In this document: positions 3,528-18,493 of the stretch, in pieces
Layout: every line of letters starts with the position of its first letter
Position numbering within the stretch: the stretch's first letter is position 1
Assembly: GCA_024704765.1 (NCBI GenBank)
Contig: JAKMXF010000221.1
Span: 310,001-374,000, forward strand
DNA from: Oopsacas minuta
Lineage: Eukaryota; Animalia; Porifera
Direction: 5' to 3'
Length of the DNA: 64,000 bases
The notes under the pieces: model-generated
Databases searched by the model: none
What the model was told of the DNA's origin: nothing
The model's input: only the letters and a program-made list of their open reading frames with translations
Position numbers and translations under genes: made by a program

Positions 3528-5645
3528 ATGGTTCAGCCTAGCCATTATGCTGAAGATGCGCACCCCTCATTCAAACAATCTCCTCCTCTTTTTGATATCT
3601 GGGGATGTTTATTTATACTACTGGTATCTGCTGGGGTATACAGAAATTCATTGAATGCTGGATTTGTATTTGACGATCACAGAGCTATTCTAACAAACAA
3701 AGATTTAGAAACTGATGGAGAGAGGACTATATTTGACCTGTTCTACAATGACTTCTGGGGCGGGGCTATGTCTCGTACACAGAGTCATAAGTCCTATCGC
3801 CCCCTTACCGTTCTAAGTTACCGTTATTTGAATTACTTAATGTTTGGGAGAGAGCCATTCACTTATCATCTAATCAATGTATTGCTACATAGTGCAGTTT
3901 CTATCTCGGTATATCATTTGTCCCGTTTGTTAGTTAGAGACAGTTTATCGTCTCTGTTCGCTTCTCTACTCTTCTCAGTTCATTCTATACACACAGAAGC
4001 AGTAGCAAATACGGTAGGTCGTGCTGAGATTCTATCTGCTCTATTCTATGTGTTAGCTATCCTCGTGTATATGAGATCTATCCGTGGTTATCAATTCTAC
4101 TCACATATATTTCTATCTGTATTTCTATCTGCATGTGCTATGCTATCTAAAGAACAAGGTATTACTTCTATAGGGATATGTATTATAGCAGATGTGTTAC
4201 TACATTGGAATCAGCTGATACTCGTATTATGCAATCTGCCGAAGTATTTGGGTGCTACCAGAGCTGTGGTGAGGGAGAGGGTAGATTGGATTCCTAATTT
4301 TGCGGTTATTCACAGTTTAATTGTAAGATGCGTTATACTGGGGATCAGTGGAACTGCGCTAATGTTCTTCAGATTGAAAATGAACCATGGATCTCAGCCT
4401 ATATTTAATGAAACAGAATTGAGGCTACTGTTTCATTCAGACAGACATGTACGAGTGATGAGTATGGGGTATCTATATGCTTTTAATTACTGGTTATTAC
4501 TCTGTCCGTATCAGCTGTGTTGTGACTGGACACACCCTTCTATCCTTCCTGTCCTGTCTCTATCAGACTCGAGGAACATTTGGCTACCTCTTCTCTTATT
4601 ATTATTCTCTGCTCTGTCATTTAGATGTATTAGCTCTAGAGAAGATAGACTCCCTCTCGGCATGTCTATTGCACTAATTATAATACCGTTCATCCCTGCT
4701 ACTGGTATAATATTTAGAATAGGATTTATAATAGCAGAGAGAGTTCTATACTTACCAAGTATTGGTCATTGTATACTAACTGCTTATGGAGCTGACAAAT
4801 TGAAAAGGTAGAGATCACTAATATTTAAATTTCTAACTTATCGATATAATATTTTGTTGTTATTTAGACATCTACACTTCTCATATTTTAGGAAGTTACT
4901 ATATATTTTTTGTTTATTTGTTGTGTTGATACAAGTGTGGCGTACATGGCTCCGAAATGAAGATTGGCTAAGCGATCTCAACTTATACAAATCAGGAGTT
5001 AAACTTAATCCTCAGAATCCTAAAATGCATAACAACTATGCAATGGAGCTTAAGGATTCTGGGAGAGACGCTGAAGCGGAGTTACACTACTTGAGAGCTT
5101 TGGAGATTGAACCAGATTATGCAGATTCTTATTTTAACTTAGGAAATCTATATGCTGACTTAAGTAAGCTAGAAATTACTATTTAATGCATTCAATATGT
5201 GTTTAGATTATTGTCTACAGATATGCATGAGAAAGCTCTCGAAATGTTCATTAAGTCCGCTTCATTCGGACAGATGCGTGCTAAAACTATGAATAACTTA
5301 GCTACTATGTATATGAAACTACAGCGTTATTCAGAAGCAGAGAAGGCATTCCATGAGCAGATAGCGATGAATCCTAATCATAACATGGCACATAACAATC
5401 TAGCTAGTCTATATGGACAAACTGGGAGGAGAGAACTAGCAAAGAAACATTTCTTAAAAGCACTTGAAATAAATCCTAGCTACGCAGAAGGTCACTTCAA
5501 TCTGGGAACTTTATATTACCAACTCGACCAGTTAGATTTAGCTGAAGACCATTTAAGACGGTCAATTCATATTAATCCTAAACACAAAGGAGCTGTCAAT
5601 AATCTAAACGTGGTATTATATGCTAAGAATCAAAAACCGAATTAA
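3528..5645 (+). CDS. TMTC: TMTC-family protein O-mannosyltransferase (TM region, DUF1736, TPRs), 3 exons
   Basis: Motifs FVFDDHRAI, DFWG, HKSYRPLT, SKEQG, GFIIAERVLYLPSIG and C-terminal TPRs; short GT-AG introns at about 4809-4890 and 5165-5219. Confidence 0.9.
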
Positions 5646-5915: not shown

Positions 5916-8900
5916 TTAATTTTCCGGGTACCACTCAAGAGGTTGTACTTCCATTAATTCAATCTTTTCTGTATCATCAGCTAGATTGATACCTTCCTCA
6001 ATCAATTCTGTAGATAAATCGTTAATATAGGTTGCTGTTGTATTTTGAGGAATGTCTGATGAAGTTGCTTTATCTATATCTGGTAAATGAAATGAATCAT
6101 CTGTGTCTGTAAGTTCATTGTTTGCTGGTTGAGTTATAACATTATCAGGAGTATTAACTTCATTCTGATCATTTACTTCTTGTAGAAAGCACCAGACCGA
6201 GCAAGATCTGAATCTACTAACTTTATACAATACCTTCTCAGTCTGTTTCATTATATAATTGTATAATTCTAGCAATTTATAATTATCGATATCACAGCCT
6301 AACTCCAAGAGCTGTATTAATTGAGAAGCAAATGTCCATCTTATAAATGTTATTGGCTTAGAATCATCGTATTTATTATTCATAACTCTAGTCTGTTTGG
6401 TGTCATTGAAATAAGAGATTATCGCAGTTCTTGAAGATTCTTTGGGAATATAGCTCAATATTTCATCCAGTGAAGCCTGTAATCAAATACACACAGTTTT
6501 AAAGAATAAAATGATACTTTAGTTATTACTAAACTAACCCATCTTAATGTATTCTGTGTTTTATGATACTGTGCATACCTTCTCAAGGTTATTTTCCTGT
6601 GATATTTCATTTTTGTTACTACCTTAACGTAGATAGCCTGTACAAATATACTGGTTATTGAGAAATCCTCTTCAGGGTACTCTAGCAATGGTTCATACAA
6701 CTTTTTAGACAATTTGTGTACGCAGATATCAGATATAATTCTATCTCTGAGATCGATAATACTCCAGAATGCTTGTGGTTCATCATCAGGAAATACGAAT
6801 CCCTGACATGCTAAGATCCTACCTTCATTTGAATTCGGTGATACCTATAGACAATGTAGGTAAGTTTATATTATTAATTCTATCACTAAACACTACTAAC
6901 CATTCTTTCCCTTGGTAAGTTATATCTCTTTGGTGTGGTATTGCTTAAGAGATCCTTGATGGCTGAGACTGATACCCAGTTATTAGAAGTACTATTCAAT
7001 CTCCACACACAAAAAGGAAGTAATTCATCATTATTTCCATTCTTTCTGTTAATCGTAAGAGTAGGACGAACAATATCAACAATGCGGTAATTGTAATCCT
7101 GTGAGAGATCTATGAATTTGAGATCTGTATTTGCCTTAACATTAAGGTAGTCAGTTATCCCTGTAGAATAGTATACAGATTAGTTGCAGGTAAACATTTT
7201 ATATCGTATTATCAAGTTAAAATCATACTTCCTACACTATAGATATGATTAACTTACAACTTGAGAATTCTTGTGGTCTTGTTACCAATACATCTATGTT
7301 CCTAGCGAATCCATTCCAGTTTATGTCATTAACTACTTTGATTAACTGAGTGGGATTAGCTCCTACTGCTAATAACAGTATTATCAACTCTAAACGCTCG
7401 TTGTATGTTAAGAGGTTCATACATGCTATTTCATTAACAGTAAGATCATCTCTTTGTATGCAAATATACCTAGTTTCTGATATTGAAGCTTTCCAGCATT
7501 TCACTCTTAAACTTTCACACAGTTTGTCAACCTCACATCGATTAGAAGAGATAAATGCTCTCTCTAAATCAGAGAGAAGAACAACTTCATAATTCTTTGG
7601 GTTATGCAGAATGTGTATTTTAATAACGTTATTGAATGTTAAGCCCTGTTTAGATATTATCCTAACCATCCTTCTATTAACTAAAACTGTTTTAATTAGG
7701 ATTTCCATTTCATTGTGTTCATATTTGGTTATAAGATTAGGACATAGTCTGTAAGGCCATTCTGATGGTTTATGAGATAATAATGAAGTTATTTGCTTGG
7801 AGTTGAGACGATCCAGATACACCATATCTTTATGGAGTAGATTTGATGAATGTAGGAAAGTGAAATGGTCAAATTCATCTGGTAAATAAAATCCTTGAGC
7901 TTGTAGAAGAATGTGTTCTAAAGAGTTCCGTTGGAATGTTTTAATCAAGTGTTTGTACTTTTTTTCCAAGAGTTCAGTCGAAACTCCGAGACTGCTCGTT
8001 ACCTAAATTAGAAAGTTAGAGTATGTGCTAGAGTAGCGCAAAACAAAGTACTTACTGATTGTAGAATTAATCCATCTCTGTTCTTAGAAACCATCCATTT
8101 CCTCAATTTATTCGGTTGATATCCTTTATTACAAATGTTTGTAAAGTCGTGAACTTGTCGTGTGTTGAAGTCTTGTATTAATCTCAGCTGTTGAAATATA
8201 TGTAGAGCTACTGGGCCAGGTAGACCGAGGCTATGCAACAAACTCAGAGATTGTAGATCCTCTACTCTTACTAGTGTGTATGGGAGCTGTAACGATTCAC
8301 AGGCTTCATCTACAGAAATAAATTGAATTACTGGAAATATGACCTTCGAAGATAATAATTTTTACCTCCAACTTGTTTTATGATTTTTTGGTAGAATACT
8401 AAATCTTTCGTTTTGAAGATTTGGTCAATTGAAATTCTCATTTCTACAGCTACTTCCTCTAGAATATAGTAGAATTCACAATAATCTGGAATACTATACA
8501 CGGGGCATATATGTTTGGGCAATACTTTCATTTTCCTGACATTATTAGTGATCACTAGTTTCGTTTTATGCGGCCCAATCTTAAAGAATTCTGTGACGTA
8601 TTTCTGATCAGGATTTATTTCTTTTGTACATTCAAATCCGTTACTCGTAATATTTTTACAAGCAAAGTATGTTAGCCATATTTTGTGTAATGGTATGCCC
8701 GTTAATCTGAGAGATATGAACAGCTGGAGATCTGGTGTGGCTGTTAGGACAGATATGTCTAAGTGTTCAGGACACCCTCCCTTAAATGCTATCACAAGCT
8801 CTTGACTACACATCCCGAGATAATCTCCTAACTCTTCAGCAGAGAAGTATATACAGTTAGACTTTATCATGGTTACAGGCTTAAGAGGAGTAGGAGGTGA

Positions 8901-11900
8901 GCTATGTATATATTTAAGAGGTAGTCTGAGTTTGATAGGTTTGTTTTTATTCCATACTGTTTTGATTTTAAACTCATCAGTTGAATCAAATTCACTCTCT
9001 TCAACATCAGAGGACTTATCATGATTTGTGAAGATTGTACCCAAAAGATTGGAAGAAAAAAAATATGTTACTTTTGCTGGGTCAGACCCTTCAATTGTTG
9101 ATTCTGAATGGTCTCTGGGTGTATAATATTTGTGTAATTTATCAAACATTATCCTGAAATTGATGGGAATTATCCCTAACATCTTAGCCTTAATAGCCTT
9201 ATTTACTATGTACTTTGGAGTTAGGAATAGTTTGTCTTTCCAAAGCTTCGCTCCTTGTTCCATGATTTCTAACAAATCCAATTCATCTTCAATTTCCAAT
9301 GAGAAAGGTTTGAGTTTGGAGTGCAGGAACTCAAAATTCCAATCCAGAAAATCAGCTAATTCGCTATGTAATATCCATTCCCCAGGCCTGCTGGATAGTT
9401 TGTAACTGCTAGGAACCCTGATTATATCTTCAGGTTTATTCACTAATGCTTTTAATTTAGTGACAGTGTGCGTAACAACTGGCTTTGCAATTTCTTTAGT
9501 GACAGTGTGCGTAATTCGCGGCTTCGGAATATCTTTGAGTTTTTTTCCACTTACTGAAGAGATCTTTGGTTTCTTGTCTGGCATTTTTTTGACAGTCTCG
9601 TCTTCCTCAATCGGCCTTTTGGTACCAGTCTCCTGAGATACTGTAGGTTTTATTGTTAGTAAAATTCTCTTCTGTTGTACAGGCGAGAATTTAATCATTT
9701 TATATACATTCAACAGTTTTTCTTTAAAGAACCCCAATTCTCTGAGATGCAGGAAGCTAGTTAGATATTCTTTCGGGTATAGTACTGTGTGTTTCATATA
9801 GTGAGGAATACCAAATGCGACAAGCATTTTAATATATCGTTTGAAAGTTGCTCTCGTTTCTGGATTAGCGTTTGTGTATGAGTATGATGGGATATTAGCA
9901 TAACTACTGAGAATATTTTGTAGACGAGTCAGTGGGATATTTGTAAATTTAGCCATATCGTGTAAAAGCACCATATTAACACTATTTTCACCTTCACATA
10001 TGTTATATACCATGATTTGGTCACGAGGCTTGAAAAGGTAGTGATCTTCAAATATTTTAAGAATGATCGTTTTATCAGATTCAGGATCTCTCACTGTATG
10101 TATTTTAAAATCAGTCGAGTATATATCTTTCTTACTGTTTATTGTATGTTTACTCTTTCTTATTAGCTTTGCTGTTGATACGATTGTGAGCACTTTTTGT
10201 GTAGTGCTATTTACTAGATTGTATAGTTCAATTAGTTTTACATTGTAAAAGCCGACTTGCCTTAATTGTAAGAGAATATTGATTTCATTCAAAGGGTATA
10301 TCGTTAGGTTTTTGTATCTGGGGACTCCTTGTAGAGCTAATTCCTCGGCATATAGCTGAAAATCTCTCTGTAAAACTACTGTTTTTGAGTTTTTGGAGTA
10401 ATAAGTAACTCCATAGCTGAGTAGAATAAGGAACAAGTTTGAAGGAGGTATTTGAGTGAATTCTGCCAGATGATGCAAGATTACAACTTGTCTGTCACTA
10501 ACAGTGTATACCTTTATTGATTTATTCTGTTTCTTCAAATTCTCAATATCCACAACCTTCAACTTGATCGACTTTTTCTTAACATTCTCAACAGTTAGAA
10601 TCTTGAAATCAACAGTTAGCATTTGTAATGCCTTGTATTTGAATATTTTCAGTGGGTCTACAGGCTCTTTAGCAATGTTAATTGAAAAATCTCTAAGTTC
10701 TATATCTCTGCTTGCTGCTGTAGCTGCAGGTGGGACCGGGGGAGGAACGCTTACCTTCTTCTCTTTGGTCCATAGACTGAAATTTATCTTCTCTTTTTTG
10801 GATTTCATGTCCAAGATCCATTTCACTTTTGAGCATTCAATCATACGGATAAGAGTGTAGCTGCCTAGATCAAACCCTTGTAGTGACAGGCTCTTTCTGT
10901 CTGTGTCTGACTTAACTACATAGATGTACACTTGGTATCTAACTTCAAGTATTGTAATTGGTACTTCAGCATGTTTCCCAAGATCTTCCAAAAGGATGTA
11001 TCCTCCCTTTTTGCTTGGTAGTTTCCATATCTTAGCAGGTTCCTTAGCTGGAGAGACTGCTTCCTCTGAGATTGAGGGAGGTTTCTGTTTATCGTCGTGA
11101 TCCCAGAATCTGATATCACTAAGAACTCTATTCACATAAGTATAGGATAGCAGTTTATTTCCATTTTGTTCAGTTATATAGAATCCGTTTGCAAACACAG
11201 TTTCCACCTGCTTTTTGTTCCACTTAAGATGCTTAGCCAACTCAGGTACAGTAACAAATTGCTCGCTATCAGACAGATCTTGGTCCTCCATTGTTTCTGG
11301 ATATACGCTATTCCGTCCTACGTCCTCTTCTTCACTGGATATCGTTATCGGAACAACTTTCAAACGTTCAAAAGTATTATGACTCGCAAGATCAGGTGTT
11401 GGTGGATAAGACTTTATTTGTGTGAATTTGCTAAGTATCAATTTCCCACGAGCATAGCCGTAGGTAGCATAAGTATCCAATTCAGATAGTGCCTATTTCA
11501 ACACGAATATATAAACTCAAATAGGAAGGGTTAACTGTACAACTTACCAGTTGTAGACGGTCTGTATAGAGACACACCATGGATTCGAGATAGTGAGGGT
11601 CTTTCTGAACATCTCTGACAATATTCTCCCATTTGCCCACCCTACATAGTCCAAGCCCTGCATCTAGTGCTGAAACACTGAATTCCATTATGGTAACCAT
11701 ATCCTGTAGATTCACATTCATTTTATTCATTAACTCACGGATAATAAAGTATGTATTATTCTTGTTATCTTCAAATTGTAAGAAATCTACTCCAGGCTTA
11801 GATCCTTTCTTCACACCTCTCGGTAATTGTTTCTGTCCAAAAATGTGAGTAATAAGATTATTACCTTTGTATTTCTCTCCCATAGTGTGTAGTTCCGCGA

Positions 11901-14900
11901 TATCTTCGTATTCAATAAGAGTAGTAGGGTATCTATAGTTTTCTTCTATCTTATACACCTAGATTAATTAAGACCTATTTTGAATTAATATTCTCTTATT
12001 TTCACCAAAAGTATGGAATACCTTGCTTAGATGTGTCTTCTCCTTTCTTTTAGTAACCCTCATTACAGCTGAATGGAATAGACACCCAAACGTAGCCTCA
12101 CTCCATCGCAGGTATTGACATAGTTCATGTCTAATCACATACTTCCTGTACTGAAGAGTTGGGAAGTAGTAGAATTTGAGTTTTGTTGGTGGATCATTTG
12201 TATCGATTCTTGTAGTTAATACCTCAGTTGGGGTAGTAATTGTATTTGCCTTTCTTGTTGATGTGGTTGATATTGTTATAGGCGATGGTGTAGTTATTTT
12301 GGGCATAGTAGTTGGTGTAGAAGACTGCGCCTCTCTATTTTCTAACAATTCTGAGTTTAAATACTTTAACTTTTGCTTGATAAGATTCCCAACCTATTGA
12401 AAATAATATTACTCATACAATTAGTGCTTTATCAGCACAAAAAATGAACTGTTACCTCATGGTAAGGGATGAGATATGCTATGGGAACACTCCTACTAAC
12501 ACCTTGAGCGTACAATGCATTCATTTCGGCTTGATCTGCTAGAATTGTAGTAAAGCACTGATGCATAGTTTGGTAGGAAATAGCTAAGAAGTCAGCGGTA
12601 GGAAGTGCTAATGCAAAATATCCCTTTCTATCAGGAAGCATGTACTGCTTGGGTGCATATCGTGTTATCAGCATTGGTTCTCCTGCATGCTGTTTATACA
12701 GAGTCTGTACATATTTGGCCATTTCTTCGCTGTCTCGAAAAGCCTGTTAAAATCGTCAATCATATAATCGTGTTTTTTAAGGGAATTATATTTGAAATAT
12801 TTCACATTACCTGTGAGCCAGGTGGGTATACACTCAGATAAGCGTATATAGTATAGAGAATAGAGTGAGCGAAGCTGTTTAGACCAAGATAGAGATTCTT
12901 CTTCAAACTTGTTTTAATCTCCAGTATAGTTGGGAATTTCTTTTTCTCAAGAGGAAATTTGAGTCCAGTGGGGGGGAGGAGAAAGGAGAAGAGTAGAACT
13001 CGTGAGTTAGAGTCTCTGTAACTCTCTAGGGCTTGATAGAAGTTTGTTAGTTGTTTTTTCTTCTTTATTTTACTGTAGTATGTTGTATATGAATCTTCGG
13101 CAGTAGCCGTGTTTTGAGATGTCAGATCAACTAAAGTAAACAAATTCTTAAATTTAGTAATTATTCTCTACAATTCCTGACACACCTATTTCTTCTCTTA
13201 ACAACTCTCTTAGCTTGCTTGTTATTAACTGTTTCAGTTTAAGAGCATCTCTCCCAATAAATGATCTAAGTTGATGCATCTTTATTGCGCTATCCAGCAT
13301 CAGCTCCATGTCTTTAACTAGCTCATTCAGTGACGTGTACCAACTAATCTTATTAATGTTAGTAGCTATAGTGTTTATATCTGGGGGTTTCCTAGGGAAA
13401 TGTCCGTATATTAATATTACTCTAATTCTACAACCATTATTAACATACTAACTTATAGTCAGTGCTTGTTTGATGCATGTCTAGGAAATGACTACACAAG
13501 TGATTGCCCTCTGAATCCTTCTGTGAAGTTATGTAGTTGTATAAAGCAAATTGTTTAGCGAGGTCTCCCTCTACACTCACCAGAGGAGGCGGTTGTAACA
13601 CTTCTAAGTGGTAGGGGATCTTAAATCTCATACCTGAGGATCTGTTATTAATATCTGGTACATTCTCTGGGGTAGAGCTGTAGCTGGGATATTTCTCTAA
13701 TGGTTGTTGTGTGAATGAAGAGAAATGAGAGAGTGATTGATTTTCCAGATTCTGGAGGATAGAGATTGTAGCCAAATGTTTATAATCAATTGTCACTTTA
13801 TTATTATTTTTCAATACCTTAAAACTGCTCATAGAACTCTGAGGGGGACTAGTAGGTCCAGATAAGGTACCAGTATTACCAAATTCTTCTAAAGTCCTCA
13901 TCATTAAGCGATTATTATTTCTCCTCGTGTTCCGCAGTATGTTCCTTATTTTTTTCCTAACTTCGTGTTGTTGTTCTGGATACTTTAAAGTGGCCTGTCA
14001 AGCATGTATTAAATGAATAATCCTATTTCTAAATTATCTTATAGCTCTCTCACCAATTTGGCCACCATGTCTAAACTCTCCTTCTTCTGGCAATTAATAG
14101 GTGAATATTTGTCTAAATATTTATCAATCAGGAACCTTATATAATTTTCAAATTCTCCTCTCATTAGTGTTGTCCTAGTCTTCTTGGCAGGTGCAGATAA
14201 ATATCCAGGCTCTGATTCTTCTGATCGTATCTGTATTAGATCATCTGATGGAGAAGCTAATGATATGCCTTGTGTATCTACTGGAGTCAGCTGTGAGATC
14301 AGAGGACTTAATATGTTACTTATTGGGGTGTTTAATTGAGTACTTATTGGAGTCGAAACTTTACGAAAATCTTGCTTTTCCTGAATGAGGATAAGTAGTT
14401 TAATTATTCGTAAGGATTTAGGGTATATGTAATGTGCAACTCACTTCGTCACTTAGAATCACAATGGATGAGTTATTAGAACATGTTTTTAGATGCTGTA
14501 CTAGAAAATCCTGTCGATGCTTAGTCTTTACTTGACTCTGTGAGAGTTCTAAATCCATATCCATCTCTAATTTCCTATTTGAATAAAGGGGATATAGAAC
14601 TGATTCAAGTAAGCTATCTAGAGCTAAGTATTTCACAATTCCTGAATTGAAGACAGATTCTAATTCCACTACAAGTCCAATCATGTAGTATTTCCCGAGG
14701 TTCTGCAGCCTCTCTTCCATCAACAAGAACATGTGATTCATGTCCATAGATACTTGCATGAAGTTTGTATAACCTCCTTCTTCAGATTTCTCTTTTATAG
14801 GCATGAACTTGTGTGATATCAGTTCCTTTCCCATCACTGCTATTAGCTTCTTCATAATGTTTATTCCATCTGGTTGTGATGCGTTTTGTACCTAAAATTA

Positions 14901-15486
14901 CGTATCTATTTGGCCATTTTGATAAATACGCTTCTTATACTTATCCACTTATTACGTTTGTATTATTCTCTATTATTCTTTTATTATTGATTCGTATTCT
15001 TAGTCTTACCTCTTCAATTAGATTCTTGACTGCATTATGGAACAGTTCACCATCATGTTCAATCAGACTACTGTTCAGTGCTCCGCTATTCTTCAATCTA
15101 CTAGTTCTATCTATCTTCGCAGAAGTCCGTTTAGATTTCCCTAATCCTTTGATGTTGACTTTAGCATTCGTCGGCACCACTGATAGTTGGGCTGGATGTT
15201 TACTCGAATGAGGAAAGGAGAATACAGAAGGTTTGCTTGGACTAAGTTTGTCATTCTTTGGTAGTTTCTGTTTTACATAGTTATGTTCATTATTAATTGA
15301 GTGGTCCTTTTTTATTCGTTTGAGTTTTAATTTCTTGAATTTTTTTAGAGAACGTTTGGGAACTTTTTCTGGAATTACGGAGGCAGGAAGTGTGAATGGC
15401 TCTAAATCTACTGTTAGTCGCTTCATCACAAATACCGAGGGGAAATTTTGATTTATAAATTTTATTTCATTTCTATTAGAGGCCAT
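5916..15486 (-). CDS. About 2,900-aa, 15-exon protein: basic N-terminus, two degenerate polybromo-like bromodomains, then repeated HTH-like modules
   Basis: Every gap between the minus-strand ORFs is a short GT-AG intron that preserves frame, e.g. NNTN|VQNASQ, SDE|EKQD, AKL|ATLK, DYK|KPPD, PPGSQ|AFRD, PYHE|VGNL, LSK|VYKI, LQL|ALSE, QVG|DEAC, LQS|VTSS, ERM|VSPN, LRW|ASLD. Confidence 0.72.
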
Positions 15487-15799
15487 TTTCCTAACAAATT
15501 TGGGTGCCTATAAATTCTTCCATTATACTATTTATATAGGGTGACCAAGATAGATTTTATATGTTATGGTTTATTTACAAGTTGAATCCATAGTGTATCG
15601 TATGTAAAACAATATATTATCCCGATTTGAGTCAGTGTCTGCTTTATAGAGACCTTGCTTATATCATGCAATACATACCCGAGTCTTATCCTAGTTATAC
15701 TCATAACGAACGACGATACTAGTACACATAATTTCGCCCTTCATTTATCAATTTTTTAGTTATTTTTGGCCTTGGTGCTAATAATAATCTGCTTAGTTT
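15487..15799. promoter_or_regulatory. Probable bidirectional promoter between the bromodomain gene and LIG1
   Basis: 313-nt gap between head-to-head ATGs; contains TGAGTCA (about 15628) and E2F-like TTTCGCCC (about 15732). Motif function is not demonstrated. Confidence 0.4.
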
Positions 15800-18493
15800 A
15801 TGTTTGGCCTTAGATGCCTTCGAAGAATATTAAAATTCAATCACTCAATTCAAAGTCCTTACTGTTATTACAGAATGTCGTTTGTTAGTATCAAGTCTTT
15901 CTTCAAACCCCTAGCTGCCCTTGATCCTCCTCAACCCTCCGCCTCCCCTGATAAGGTGCCTGTTATGGAGTCCCCTTCTCTGGAGTTAGGAGCTTCTCCG
16001 ATCCTCTCAGGAAATGTTTGTAAACGGTCGAAAGAGCTCAGTGCTGACCTGCCACTGCTCAGAGGGAGGAAGAGAAAGGTCAGAGCCAGATTACTGGAGA
16101 GTGATTCTGAAGAAGATATCCCTGATAATACTACAGATAATGTTGTGGATAGAAAGCTAGCTAGAGTAAGACCTGAACACAAACCTGATTCAAAGCTTCT
16201 TGAAGCTAAATTTGATAATTTCAGGAGTCCTGATACTAATAAATCAATGGTAGCTAGTCCAATATCTGCTAGTGTTATATCCAGTCCAAAAATAACTCCA
16301 GGTCTGAATGGGACATTTGATAAATTCGAGGAGAACAGTCTTAAGAGACTGAAGATTAGCGGTACTACTGTTATTCCTGTGACTCCAACCTCACCTCTTA
16401 TAGAGAGAGAATTAATGGATACTTGTGAGCAGGATATAGCCATTGAATCTCCTGTTCCCAAAACTAAATGCAACCCAATCTCTAAGAATACTCACACTCC
16501 AGAAGCTAAGAATTCCTCTCCTTCTATTTCCCATCCTCACATAGTCTCTAAGTCTAATTACTACCCTGATCAGAGGGATTATCATCCTGTAGACAGTGCA
16601 TGTTGGGAGACAAAGACTCCTATTCCCTATCTAGCTCTAGCTCGGACTTTCCAAGCGGTGGAGAGTAACTCATCTCGACTTCGCATACAATCAATTCTCT
16701 GTAACTATCTACGATCTGTTCTAGCCTTATCTTCCCCACAGGAGCTAATATGTAGCGTCTATCTAACTCTGAACCGTCTGGGTCCTGCCTGGAGAGGAGA
16801 GGAACTGGGTGTAGGGGAGGGGGTGCTGATACGAGCTCTGGTACAAGCAACTGGTCGTTCCCAGAAAGCGATTAAAGATGAGCTTTATAAAGTTGGAGAT
16901 ATCGGTCTGGTAGCAGAATCCAGCAGATGTACTCAGAGAATGATGTTTAAGCCCTCTGCACTAACAGTAGAAGCTGTATTCTCTAAGCTGCAGGAAATCG
17001 CTCGTTTCACTGGCTGCTCTAGTCAACAGAAGAAAGTTGAAAAGATATCTGCTCTCCTCGTAGCATGCAGAGACACAGAGACTAGGTACTTAATACGGGG
17101 TTTGTCTGGTAAGCTACGGATACGTTTACAAGAGCAGACCGTCCTCACATCTCTAGCTCATGCTGTCTGTCTGCATGAAATGGAGAGGTCGGGGAAATGT
17201 GCTAAAGGAGAGGAGTTGAAAGAGAAGATGGATACTGCTGTACAGACATTGAAGAGTGTGTATTGTGAACTACCAGATTATGAAAGAGTTATTCCCGCTC
17301 TCCTAGAGCAAGGATTGGAAGCATTACCAAAGTTCTGCTGTCTTACTCCAGGTATACCACTCAAACCTATGCTAGCACAACCTACTAAGGGACTAAGTGA
17401 AATATTCAAGCGTGTAGATCAGGCCGCTATTTCATGTGAGTACAAATATGATGGAGAGAGAGCACAGATACACGTCATAGCTCCTGGTAAAGTTAGAATA
17501 TTTTCACGTAATCAAGAAGATATGACAGATAAGTTTCCTGATGTCATAGATAGACTGCCTCGACATCTGGGTAATAACGTGGCGTCATGTGTACTTGATT
17601 CTGAGGTTGTAGCTAGAGATACAGAAAAGAATCAGAAACTTCCTTTTCAGGTTTTAACCACTAGAAAGCGTAAGGGAGTTAGTTTAGAAGAGATTAAGGT
17701 ACAGGTCTGTGTATACGCGTTTGACTTGCTTTATCTTAACGGAGAGAGTTTAGTGCACGAATCATTCCGTAGAAGAAGTAAGATAATGAGAAATAGCTTT
17801 AAACCAGTTGATGGAGAGTTTGTATTCTCAGAACAGAAGATAACTAGTTGTACTGAGGATATACAGGCATTCTTTGAGGGTTCTCTTAAAGATCAATGCG
17901 AGGGATTAATGATAAAGACTCTAGATCATAATGCTACCTACGAGATCAGCAAGAGGTCCTTCAACTGGCTTAAACTCAAGAAGGATTATCTAGATGGGAC
18001 AGGAGATACACTGGACCTAGTAGTAGTGGGAGCATATCAGGGTACTGGTAAGCGTACAGGTAACTACGGGGGGTTCCTACTAGCTTGTTACGATCCGGAC
18101 AGTGAGGAGTATCAGGTCATTTGTAAGACAGGAACTGGTTTCTCAGATGCTCAGCTAGAAGCTCAGTATAATATCCTCAAACAACACGTTATACCTATAC
18201 CTAAGCCCTATTACAGTTTGGGAACATGTCCTGCTCCAGATGTGTGGTTTGATTCTAACTACGTTTGGGAAGTGAAAGCAGCTGACTTCTCTCTTTCCCC
18301 GATATACCCAGCTGCTGCTGGGTTAGCAGATCGAGAGAGAGGGATCTCTCTTCGATTTCCTAGATTCATTCGTGTGCGAGAGGATAAGACCCCAGAGGAC
18401 GCGACTACTTCAGAACAAATAGCTCACATGTATCGCAGTCAGCAGTCAGTATCTGGTATTATAACCTCTACGACAGGAGAAGACTACTATTAA
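15800..18493 (+). CDS. LIG1: DNA ligase I, intronless
   Basis: PIP-like SIKSFF, adenylation motif CEYKYDGERAQIH, EGLMIK, WLKLKKDY, SLRFPRF. Confidence 0.97.
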   Translation: MFGLRCLRRILKFNHSIQSPYCYYRMSFVSIKSFFKPLAALDPPQPSASPDKVPVMESPSLELGASPILSGNVCKRSKELSADLPLLRGRKRKVRARLLESDSEEDIPDNTTDNVVDRKLARVRPEHKPDSKLLEAKFDNFRSPDTNKSMVASPISASVISSPKITPGLNGTFDKFEENSLKRLKISGTTVIPVTPTSPLIERELMDTCEQDIAIESPVPKTKCNPISKNTHTPEAKNSSPSISHPHIVSKSNYYPDQRDYHPVDSACWETKTPIPYLALARTFQAVESNSSRLRIQSILCNYLRSVLALSSPQELICSVYLTLNRLGPAWRGEELGVGEGVLIRALVQATGRSQKAIKDELYKVGDIGLVAESSRCTQRMMFKPSALTVEAVFSKLQEIARFTGCSSQQKKVEKISALLVACRDTETRYLIRGLSGKLRIRLQEQTVLTSLAHAVCLHEMERSGKCAKGEELKEKMDTAVQTLKSVYCELPDYERVIPALLEQGLEALPKFCCLTPGIPLKPMLAQPTKGLSEIFKRVDQAAISCEYKYDGERAQIHVIAPGKVRIFSRNQEDMTDKFPDVIDRLPRHLGNNVASCVLDSEVVARDTEKNQKLPFQVLTTRKRKGVSLEEIKVQVCVYAFDLLYLNGESLVHESFRRRSKIMRNSFKPVDGEFVFSEQKITSCTEDIQAFFEGSLKDQCEGLMIKTLDHNATYEISKRSFNWLKLKKDYLDGTGDTLDLVVVGAYQGTGKRTGNYGGFLLACYDPDSEEYQVICKTGTGFSDAQLEAQYNILKQHVIPIPKPYYSLGTCPAPDVWFDSNYVWEVKAADFSLSPIYPAAAGLADRERGISLRFPRFIRVREDKTPEDATTSEQIAHMYRSQQSVSGIITSTTGEDYY

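Follow-up and report, generated by a model that had tools for sequence, protein, structure and literature searches.

A chain of open reading frames (ORFs) on the minus strand of the genome of the glass sponge Oopsacas minuta proved to be a single 16-exon gene, and the 2,858-amino-acid protein it encodes is likely to be a nuclear scaffold that makes multivalent contacts with chromatin or DNA. The gene occupies positions 5916-15486 of the window, by which we mean the whole stretch of 64,000 nucleotides (nt) analyzed here (assembly GCA_024704765.1, contig JAKMXF010000221.1, positions 310,001 to 374,000 of the forward strand); all features of the gene given below lie on the minus strand. From the N terminus, the protein would consist of a lysine/arginine-rich region, a bromodomain-like module, a motif resembling a SUMO-interaction motif (SIM), two tandem bromodomains in which the canonical asparagine is replaced (Asn-less bromodomains), at least six or seven winged-helix modules of the DHD type, and a conserved C-terminal third. 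We infer the nuclear location from the domain types, which elsewhere occur in nuclear chromatin proteins. These appear to be known kinds of domain in a new combination; no earlier description was found of the repeats as a sequence family, of their copy number per chain, or of their fusion to Asn-less bromodomains of the polybromo class.

In the ORF list of the window, the region appears as a series of open segments that switch frame. Joining these segments at GT-AG introns yielded a single 8,577-nt open frame, corresponding to 2,858 amino acids and a stop codon (5916-5918). A preliminary description, made from the letters of the sequence, had proposed that the string of ORFs is one gene of about 2,900 amino acids with 14 junctions. 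The single large protein stood, with the exact length given above, but our model has 15 introns; the one at 13752-13817 is in frame and contains no stop codon, so that it lies hidden inside an ORF and is invisible in the ORF track. Introns range from 53 to 118 nt, all are GT-AG, and the reading frame is kept at each. Exons 1-4 are located at 15010-15486, 14445-14891, 14054-14380, and 13818-13994; exons 5-8 at 13453-13751, 13186-13391, 12811-13130, and 12456-12743; exons 9-12 at 12022-12393, 11548-11958, 8366-11492 (exon 11, the big exon, with 1,042 amino acids), and 8056-8309; and exons 13-16 at 7258-8002, 6901-7160, 6539-6844, and 5916-6476.

Four public sequencing runs were aligned to 9650-15600, and the RNA evidence therefore covers the 5' two-thirds of the gene and ten introns. 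Two of the runs (X1 and X3) are DNA, with long unspliced contigs, and one from the same sample (X4) is RNA-like, with TruSeq-type adaptor ends. The mix of run types, from one 2023 study (long-contig DNA, Nextera ends, TruSeq RNA), would suit the methods of the Oopsacas genome paper (PMC10280926). In the X4 contigs, ten joints skip sequence bounded by CT and AC on the plus strand, equivalent to GT..AG on the minus strand. All ten introns of the model in this region were thus confirmed: 14892-15009 (118 nt), 14381-14444 (64 nt), 13995-14053 (59 nt), 13752-13817 (66 nt; joint 13751->13818, depth 558), 13392-13452 (61 nt), 13131-13185 (55 nt), 12744-12810 (67 nt), 12394-12455 (62 nt), 11959-12021 (63 nt), and 11493-11547 (55 nt). 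The key intron is 12394-12455, which takes exon 8 (PYHE) to exon 9 (VGNL). This junction had been correctly foreseen, but at 12394-12456 and with a length of 63 nt. Its joint in X4 (12391->12454, with the cut at +2) had a depth of 596.8 and a shorter flank of at least 255 letters, and the depth of the two bins containing the intron (464.9 and 542.9, versus 596.8 adjacent) is that expected for zero intron coverage. Moreover, a single X4 contig of 1,107 nt joins exons 7, 8, and 9 (aligned on 12810-13130, 12454-12742, and 12020-12391), so that the stop at 12432 is bypassed through splicing. Transcripts ending at this stop had been named in the preliminary description as the sign of separate genes, and the opposite was seen. 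A minor alternative joint, 11492/11549, skips 56 letters and carries one inserted letter. Its depth is 5.5, compared with 691.7 at the main joint (11493-11547); it would shift the frame and probably reflects an error of assembly or splicing.

The five 3' introns (8310-8365, 8003-8055, 7161-7257, 6845-6900, and 6477-6538) were chosen as GT-AG introns of typical length that keep the frame, and were compared with orthologues. When the big exon was run through phmmer without filters against a set of 1.84 billion representatives, only three proteins matched (46-54% identical), and a profile search of a 5.8-billion collection added four more relatives, giving seven orthologues in total. Among the 1.84 billion representatives, no relatives beyond these eight closely related lineages were found, which supports the earlier suggestion that the gene is lineage-specific. 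The database entries of the seven relatives are ORF-level gene calls, in which the spliced genes are split into pieces. All 16 exons of the window map one-to-one onto each of the seven loci, and the spliced orthologues are open 16-exon frames of 2,754-2,821 amino acids. In most cases AG and GT match the predicted place and phase exactly, with a number of sites shifted by a few codons; at one locus (L005), the acceptor of exon 3 was re-chosen so that the frame stays open. On the basis of this matching exon map, of the intron places and phases, and of the open frames in the seven loci, we accepted the five 3' introns. Gene order was retained as well: on the contigs of all seven relatives (L001 and L003-L008), the gene stands between DNA ligase I and a TMTC-type tetratricopeptide repeat (TPR) protein.

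The gene is expressed, conserved, and under purifying selection in eight lineages. In the closer pairs, the ratio of nonsynonymous to synonymous substitution rates (dN/dS) was 0.11-0.37 in all regions except the tail, with the lowest values in the bromodomain part. Run X5 represents a relative ~96% identical to the window over 9650-15600, and the pattern of its insertions and deletions is an independent check of the exon map. Among those listed, the insertions of +6 at 10853, +3 at 11014, and +3 at 13189 are all exonic, all changes of 1 or 4 nt (11505, 11530, 13179, and 13806) are intronic, and one 3-nt deletion is intronic.

Pfam gave no match on the ten raw ORFs, since introns split the bromodomains. 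The family PF00439 was rerun on exon-exact pieces, with a curated cut-off of 21.7 bits. Bromodomain B (13199-13589, amino acids ~531-640), detected by Pfam and by profile, extends over exons 5-6 and contains the intron 13392-13452. Exon 6 alone matched positions 35-82 of the 84 in PF00439 (E = 3.4e-5), and its 24.2 bits exceed the cut-off; the orthologous exons at L001 and L004 scored 38.5 and 29 bits. When an eight-species profile of exon 6 was compared with PDB, PBRM1 scored 3.6e-24, a value summed over its bromodomains, with its third bromodomain (BD3) at 1.5e-6 and BRG1 at 1.6e-5; Rsc1, TAF1, and ASH1L matched too. Judged by these sequence comparisons, the assignment of B as a bromodomain of the polybromo/BRG1 class is secure. 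The HMMER alignment to PBRM1 places 'KLHQ' over 'tYNe', so that a His, invariant in all eight species, stands at the Asn position.

Bromodomain C (12681-13071, amino acids ~665-772), in exons 7-8 with the intron 12744-12810, had no Pfam match and was recognized by profile matches to PDB. With a four-sequence profile of exon 7, all 12 matches were to bromodomains of PBRM1 (BD5) or SMARCA2, in the right register (E = 0.022-1.6), and an eight-sequence profile gave four PBRM1 matches (E = 0.08-0.13). B and C aligned collinearly by hhalign over 101 columns, a weak similarity that is not significant (E = 0.03). In addition, C carries a PBRM1-like 'PPGSQAFRDS' motif, and its SVYPPGSQAFRDS resembles the polybromo 'tYNePGSQvFkDA'. 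Comparing 'SVYPPGSQ' with 'tYNePGSQ', we take a Tyr to stand at the Asn position, which is our own reading of the motif and not a tool alignment. Read from the sequence, a '..PGSQ.F.DA'-like motif that follows the Asn position is presumably common to the gene and PBRM1. C is therefore a probable bromodomain on its profile matches. Module A (14574-15039, amino acids ~150-265, containing the intron 14892-15009) was picked up by protein language-model features: of the 100 named clusters nearest to it, almost all are bromodomain clusters, with a score of only 0.78. It matched no hidden Markov model (HMM) or PDB profile, its hhalign comparison with B was not significant, and it is only a lead to a third, very diverged bromodomain-like module.

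The Asn at the end of helix B of a bromodomain hydrogen-bonds acetyl-lysine, and Asn-less bromodomains occur in other proteins; its replacement bears on function, not on membership in the bromodomain fold. Of the preliminary claims about this part of the protein, the bromodomains held for one secure domain (by Pfam and the PBRM1 profile) and a probable second, with the third being a lead only, and the label 'chromatin reader' goes further than the domains establish, as both aligned bromodomains are without the Asn that anchors acetyl-lysine. Neither BAH nor HMG gave a Pfam match on any ORF at E up to 1, which at the Pfam level bears out the earlier remark that neither is visible.

The second part of the protein contains the repeats. 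A first winged-helix-like module (12364-12656, amino acids 781-857), found by hhalign and by the core profile described below, straddles the key intron. It is followed by two weaker modules with a strand and a helix-turn-helix (10803-11258, amino acids ~1187-1236 and ~1262-1338; core profile), by a tandem pair of ~170-residue units (9603-10631, amino acids 1396-1561 and 1562-1738; phmmer, hhalign, and AlphaFold), and by two further modules (8658-9416, amino acids ~1801-1898 and ~1946-2053; hhalign and core profile). BLASTP self-comparison detected no repeats, and an HMM iterated on the single protein was set aside as circular. The two units of the pair matched each other at 2e-15 in phmmer and 3e-20 in hhalign; as far as sequence comparison goes, this shows a tandem duplication of the ~170-residue unit. 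With the eight-species alignment, hhalign matched 781-857 to 1801-1880 (E = 6.5e-9, probability 95.8) and 1401-1461 to 1946-2007 (E = 1.5e-7), and these similarities hold after correction for 2,080 comparisons. The first of them runs across a splice site on one side and along the uninterrupted 1801-1880 on the other, and thus links both halves of the gene by independent evidence, upholding the proposed joining of the bromodomain part to the repeat part.

To count the copies, we used a core profile made from the strand and helix-turn-helix core of five copies and scored against 80 decoys. The 781-857 module and those at 1801 and 1946 were found in all eight species, and the segment 1267-1286 in seven of eight, above all 80 decoys. 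The segment 1186-1209 was found in four of eight, at decoy level. The modules at amino acids ~1187-1338 also have a matching secondary-structure pattern in a low-confidence model of the whole exon. These comparisons support six to seven copies of the module. Past amino acid ~2060, the core profile found none; the array of repeats described earlier is thus supported, as one kind of module, for six to seven copies and not for the whole C-terminal 2,000 amino acids.

The fold of the repeat unit was predicted from an AlphaFold model of amino acids 1380-1745 (m51743a8f5197), built with four orthologues. Its mean predicted local distance difference test (pLDDT) score was 65 and its predicted template-modeling (pTM) score 0.41, with domain cores at ~80. 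In each modeled unit, a double beta-hairpin is followed by a short hairpin and a helix-turn-helix, after which come a long helix, a strand, and a further two helices. The DHD/INI1-type winged helix is built from a strand, a helix-turn-helix, and a wing into which one more helix is set, and it packs on a small sheet. In Foldseek searches against PDB, Dachshund and SnoN ranked at the top (E = 0.4-0.6), and the best structural matches included SnoN, SKI, the PUFD domain of BCOR, and Dachshund. The top AlphaFold DB cluster was a SKI/SNO/DAC-domain protein (E = 5.6e-5, probability 0.96, both units aligned), followed by KilA-N, ORF6N, Bro-N, and an 'INI1 DNA binding domain' protein. Similarly, dac-1, PHF10, SMARCB1, SKIDA1, and SAYP headed the list for Swiss-Prot models, and the ESM Atlas returned ORF6N, AntA, and Bro-N clusters. 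From these models, we infer that the repeats fold as winged helices of the DHD-like type.

Sequence searches returned no such relationship. The 1,050-residue ORF had no Pfam match to SKI/SNO/DAC or INI1 at E up to 1, and the two-unit profile gave only chance Rab matches among PDB sequences. The profiles of exons 2, 8, 10, and 13 gave nothing meaningful against PDB sequences, and the language-model neighbors of the big exon were weak helix-turn-helix leads only (score 0.73). The repeats, described at first as novel, form a new sequence family, yet the fold predicted for them, the DHD-like winged helix, is known.

INI1, PHF10, SnoN/SKI/DACH1, BCOR, and DNTTIP1, along with Mbp1 by structure, have been grouped (Allen et al. 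2015, PMC4509781) as a single family of chromatin proteins of metazoans that share a DHD-like winged helix. The likeness of the modules to this family (SMARCB1/INI1, PHF10/SAYP, SKI/SnoN/DACH, SKIDA1, and BCOR PUFD) lies in the predicted fold of the unit and in its occurrence in such chromatin proteins, whereas sequence similarity is undetectable, both by Pfam and by the repeat profile against PDB. Known members contain one domain, compared with at least six or seven in a row here, and the best units here carry an extra double beta-hairpin ahead of the domain. The best structural match was the SKI/SNO/DAC-domain protein of AlphaFold DB cluster A0A3M6TVL3 (976 amino acids), whose residues 11-336 align with both units. 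The modeled structures suggest that this protein, too, has tandem DHD-like domains, but identity is 13%, the template-modeling score is 0.17 (query) or 0.07 (hit), the root-mean-square deviation over the whole alignment is 34, and it has no known bromodomain. Phage and bacterial KilA-N, ORF6N, Bro-N, and AntA, together with fungal APSES/Mbp1, were recurrent structural neighbors of the unit core, and a similarity between INI1 and Mbp1 has been noted (PMC4509781). However, the scores of the KilA-N group are weak, and its members belong to other kingdoms and have single domains. Given the 15 spliceosomal introns and the fixed synteny, there is no sign of recent transfer. No described counterpart was found for the architecture as a whole, Asn-less polybromo-class bromodomains with a long DHD-like array, in agreement with the preliminary description, which did not recognize it either.

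Further regions of the protein are conserved. In a SUMO-interaction motif, Ser and acidic residues flank a hydrophobic core of four residues. At the end of exon 2, directly after module A (14445-14465, amino acids 302-308), we found [IV]VILSD[DE] followed by E, kept in all eight species and varying only between I and V at position 1 and between D and E at position 7. By its pattern, [IV]VILSD[DE]E would be SIM-like, with a hydrophobic core followed by an acidic, phosphorylatable flank. The C-terminal third (5916-8633, amino acids ~2062-2858) is conserved, with a dN/dS of 0.20-0.36 for amino acids 2151-2770; it has no Pfam match, the profile of exon 13 had no PDB match, and the repeat core profile found nothing there. 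It ends in a poorly conserved acidic tail (5916-6180, amino acids 2771-2858) with an isoelectric point (pI) of 4.05 and a dN/dS of 0.6-0.7, which is missing or shorter in the L001/L005/L007 group. The whole protein is basic (pI 9.1), as are bromodomain C and the repeat units, and the lysine/arginine-rich N terminus is very basic.

We regard a nuclear, multivalent chromatin- or DNA-binding scaffold as the probable role of this protein. Its winged-helix modules would contact DNA, nucleosomes, or partners, with many weak contacts adding up; the Asn-less bromodomains would bind a ligand other than acetyl-lysine or act as structural modules; and the SIM-like motif could recruit SUMOylated partners. 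Several points weigh against such a role. RNA supports ten of the 15 introns, with the five 3' ones resting on orthologues. The language-model neighbors of exon 7 are unrelated ELO clusters, in addition to the missing Pfam match of bromodomain C, and without the canonical Asn the reading of acetyl-lysine may be lost. Confidence is medium for the two-unit model and poor for that of the whole exon (mean pLDDT 40.9), so that only the secondary-structure pattern of the latter was used. A third of the protein is without a domain assignment. Finally, what the DHD-type domains of SKI, SnoN, and BCOR bind is protein and not DNA. The main rival to a DNA-binding scaffold is accordingly one in which the winged-helix-like modules are protein-protein interaction modules, making the protein a co-repressor-type scaffold that does not itself contact DNA. 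The presence of SnoN, SKI, BCOR PUFD, and Dachshund among the best structural matches speaks for it, as does the conserved SIM-like motif, which fits a partner-recruiting scaffold; we hold it to be possible, if somewhat doubtful.

Other explanations concern the identity of the gene. It could be an extremely diverged glass-sponge orthologue of PBRM1 that kept two or three of six bromodomains and had its BAH and HMG domains replaced. PBRM1/BAF180 and SMARCA2/4 (bromodomain family VIII) are the closest to B by profile and the only matches of C, the bromodomains are N-terminal and tandem as in PBRM1, and the repeats resemble the winged helix of the PBAF/BAF subunits PHF10 and SMARCB1. Yet the similarity is confined to the bromodomains, and BRG1, Rsc1, and TAF1 bromodomains score like single PBRM1 bromodomains (1e-5). 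PBRM1 is defined by six bromodomains, two BAH domains, and an HMG box, whereas the gene has two or perhaps three bromodomain-like modules, with His or Tyr in place of Asn, undetected BAH and HMG, and ~2,000 further residues without a counterpart; we therefore consider orthology unlikely. PBAF carries polybromo-type bromodomains and INI1/PHF10-type winged helices on separate subunits, and the compact genomes of glass sponges have been reported to be without several core metazoan genes. One might thus picture a glass-sponge accessory subunit of chromatin remodeling that fuses the two module kinds of PBAF, reads a mark other than acetyl-lysine with its Asn-less bromodomains, and replaces or supplements PBRM1, a proposal we judge improbable. 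Two other forms of the locus, a bromodomain gene that terminates with the stop at 12432 and has separate repeat genes downstream, or an intronless viral or transposon ORF cassette, are suggested by the look of the raw ORF track and by public ORF-level calls, which list the pieces as separate proteins. Against them stand the RNA contig that splices 12394-12455 and both neighboring introns, the frame kept at every intron, the intron places, phases, and synteny shared by seven orthologues, and a first repeat module that spans the junction; we consider this reading extremely unlikely. Introns, synteny, and selection rule out a viral or transposon cassette. The RNA joints, the single open frame, and the exon structure of the seven orthologues instead bear out the proposal of one gene.

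With the scaffold as the favored reading, the glass-sponge gene set gains a large, conserved, and expressed protein of chromatin type, and neither polybromo nor chromatin is mentioned in the Oopsacas genome paper. The gene is broken into unrecognizable pieces by gene calls made at the ORF level and possibly also by the low-intron annotation that was published; short in-frame introns can thus disguise real sponge genes as cassettes of orphan ORFs. The same paper gives 1.59 introns per gene (PMC10280926), and short introns of this sort might help explain so low a count. The protein also offers a test case for the ligands of Asn-less bromodomains, for DHD-type winged helices strung together for multivalent binding of DNA or nucleosomes, and for early-animal, lineage-specific chromatin factors built from the SWI/SNF domain repertoire.

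The neighbors of the gene in the window are the TMTC-type TPR gene (3528-5645) and DNA ligase I (15800-18493), both on the plus strand. They belong to a wider block of ETF-QO, RPL23A, DNA ligase I, the gene, TMTC, and a CBM21 protein, whose outer genes are present in the relatives where the fetched contigs reach. The first ATG of the gene is at 15486, and a Met at amino acid 21 (15426) follows 20 codons downstream. The alignments and first ATGs of the orthologues begin near amino acids 16-21 of the window protein, and the true translation start may be amino acid 21. The start of the gene is ~310-370 nt from the divergent start of DNA ligase I at 15800, so that a bidirectional promoter common to both genes is probable.

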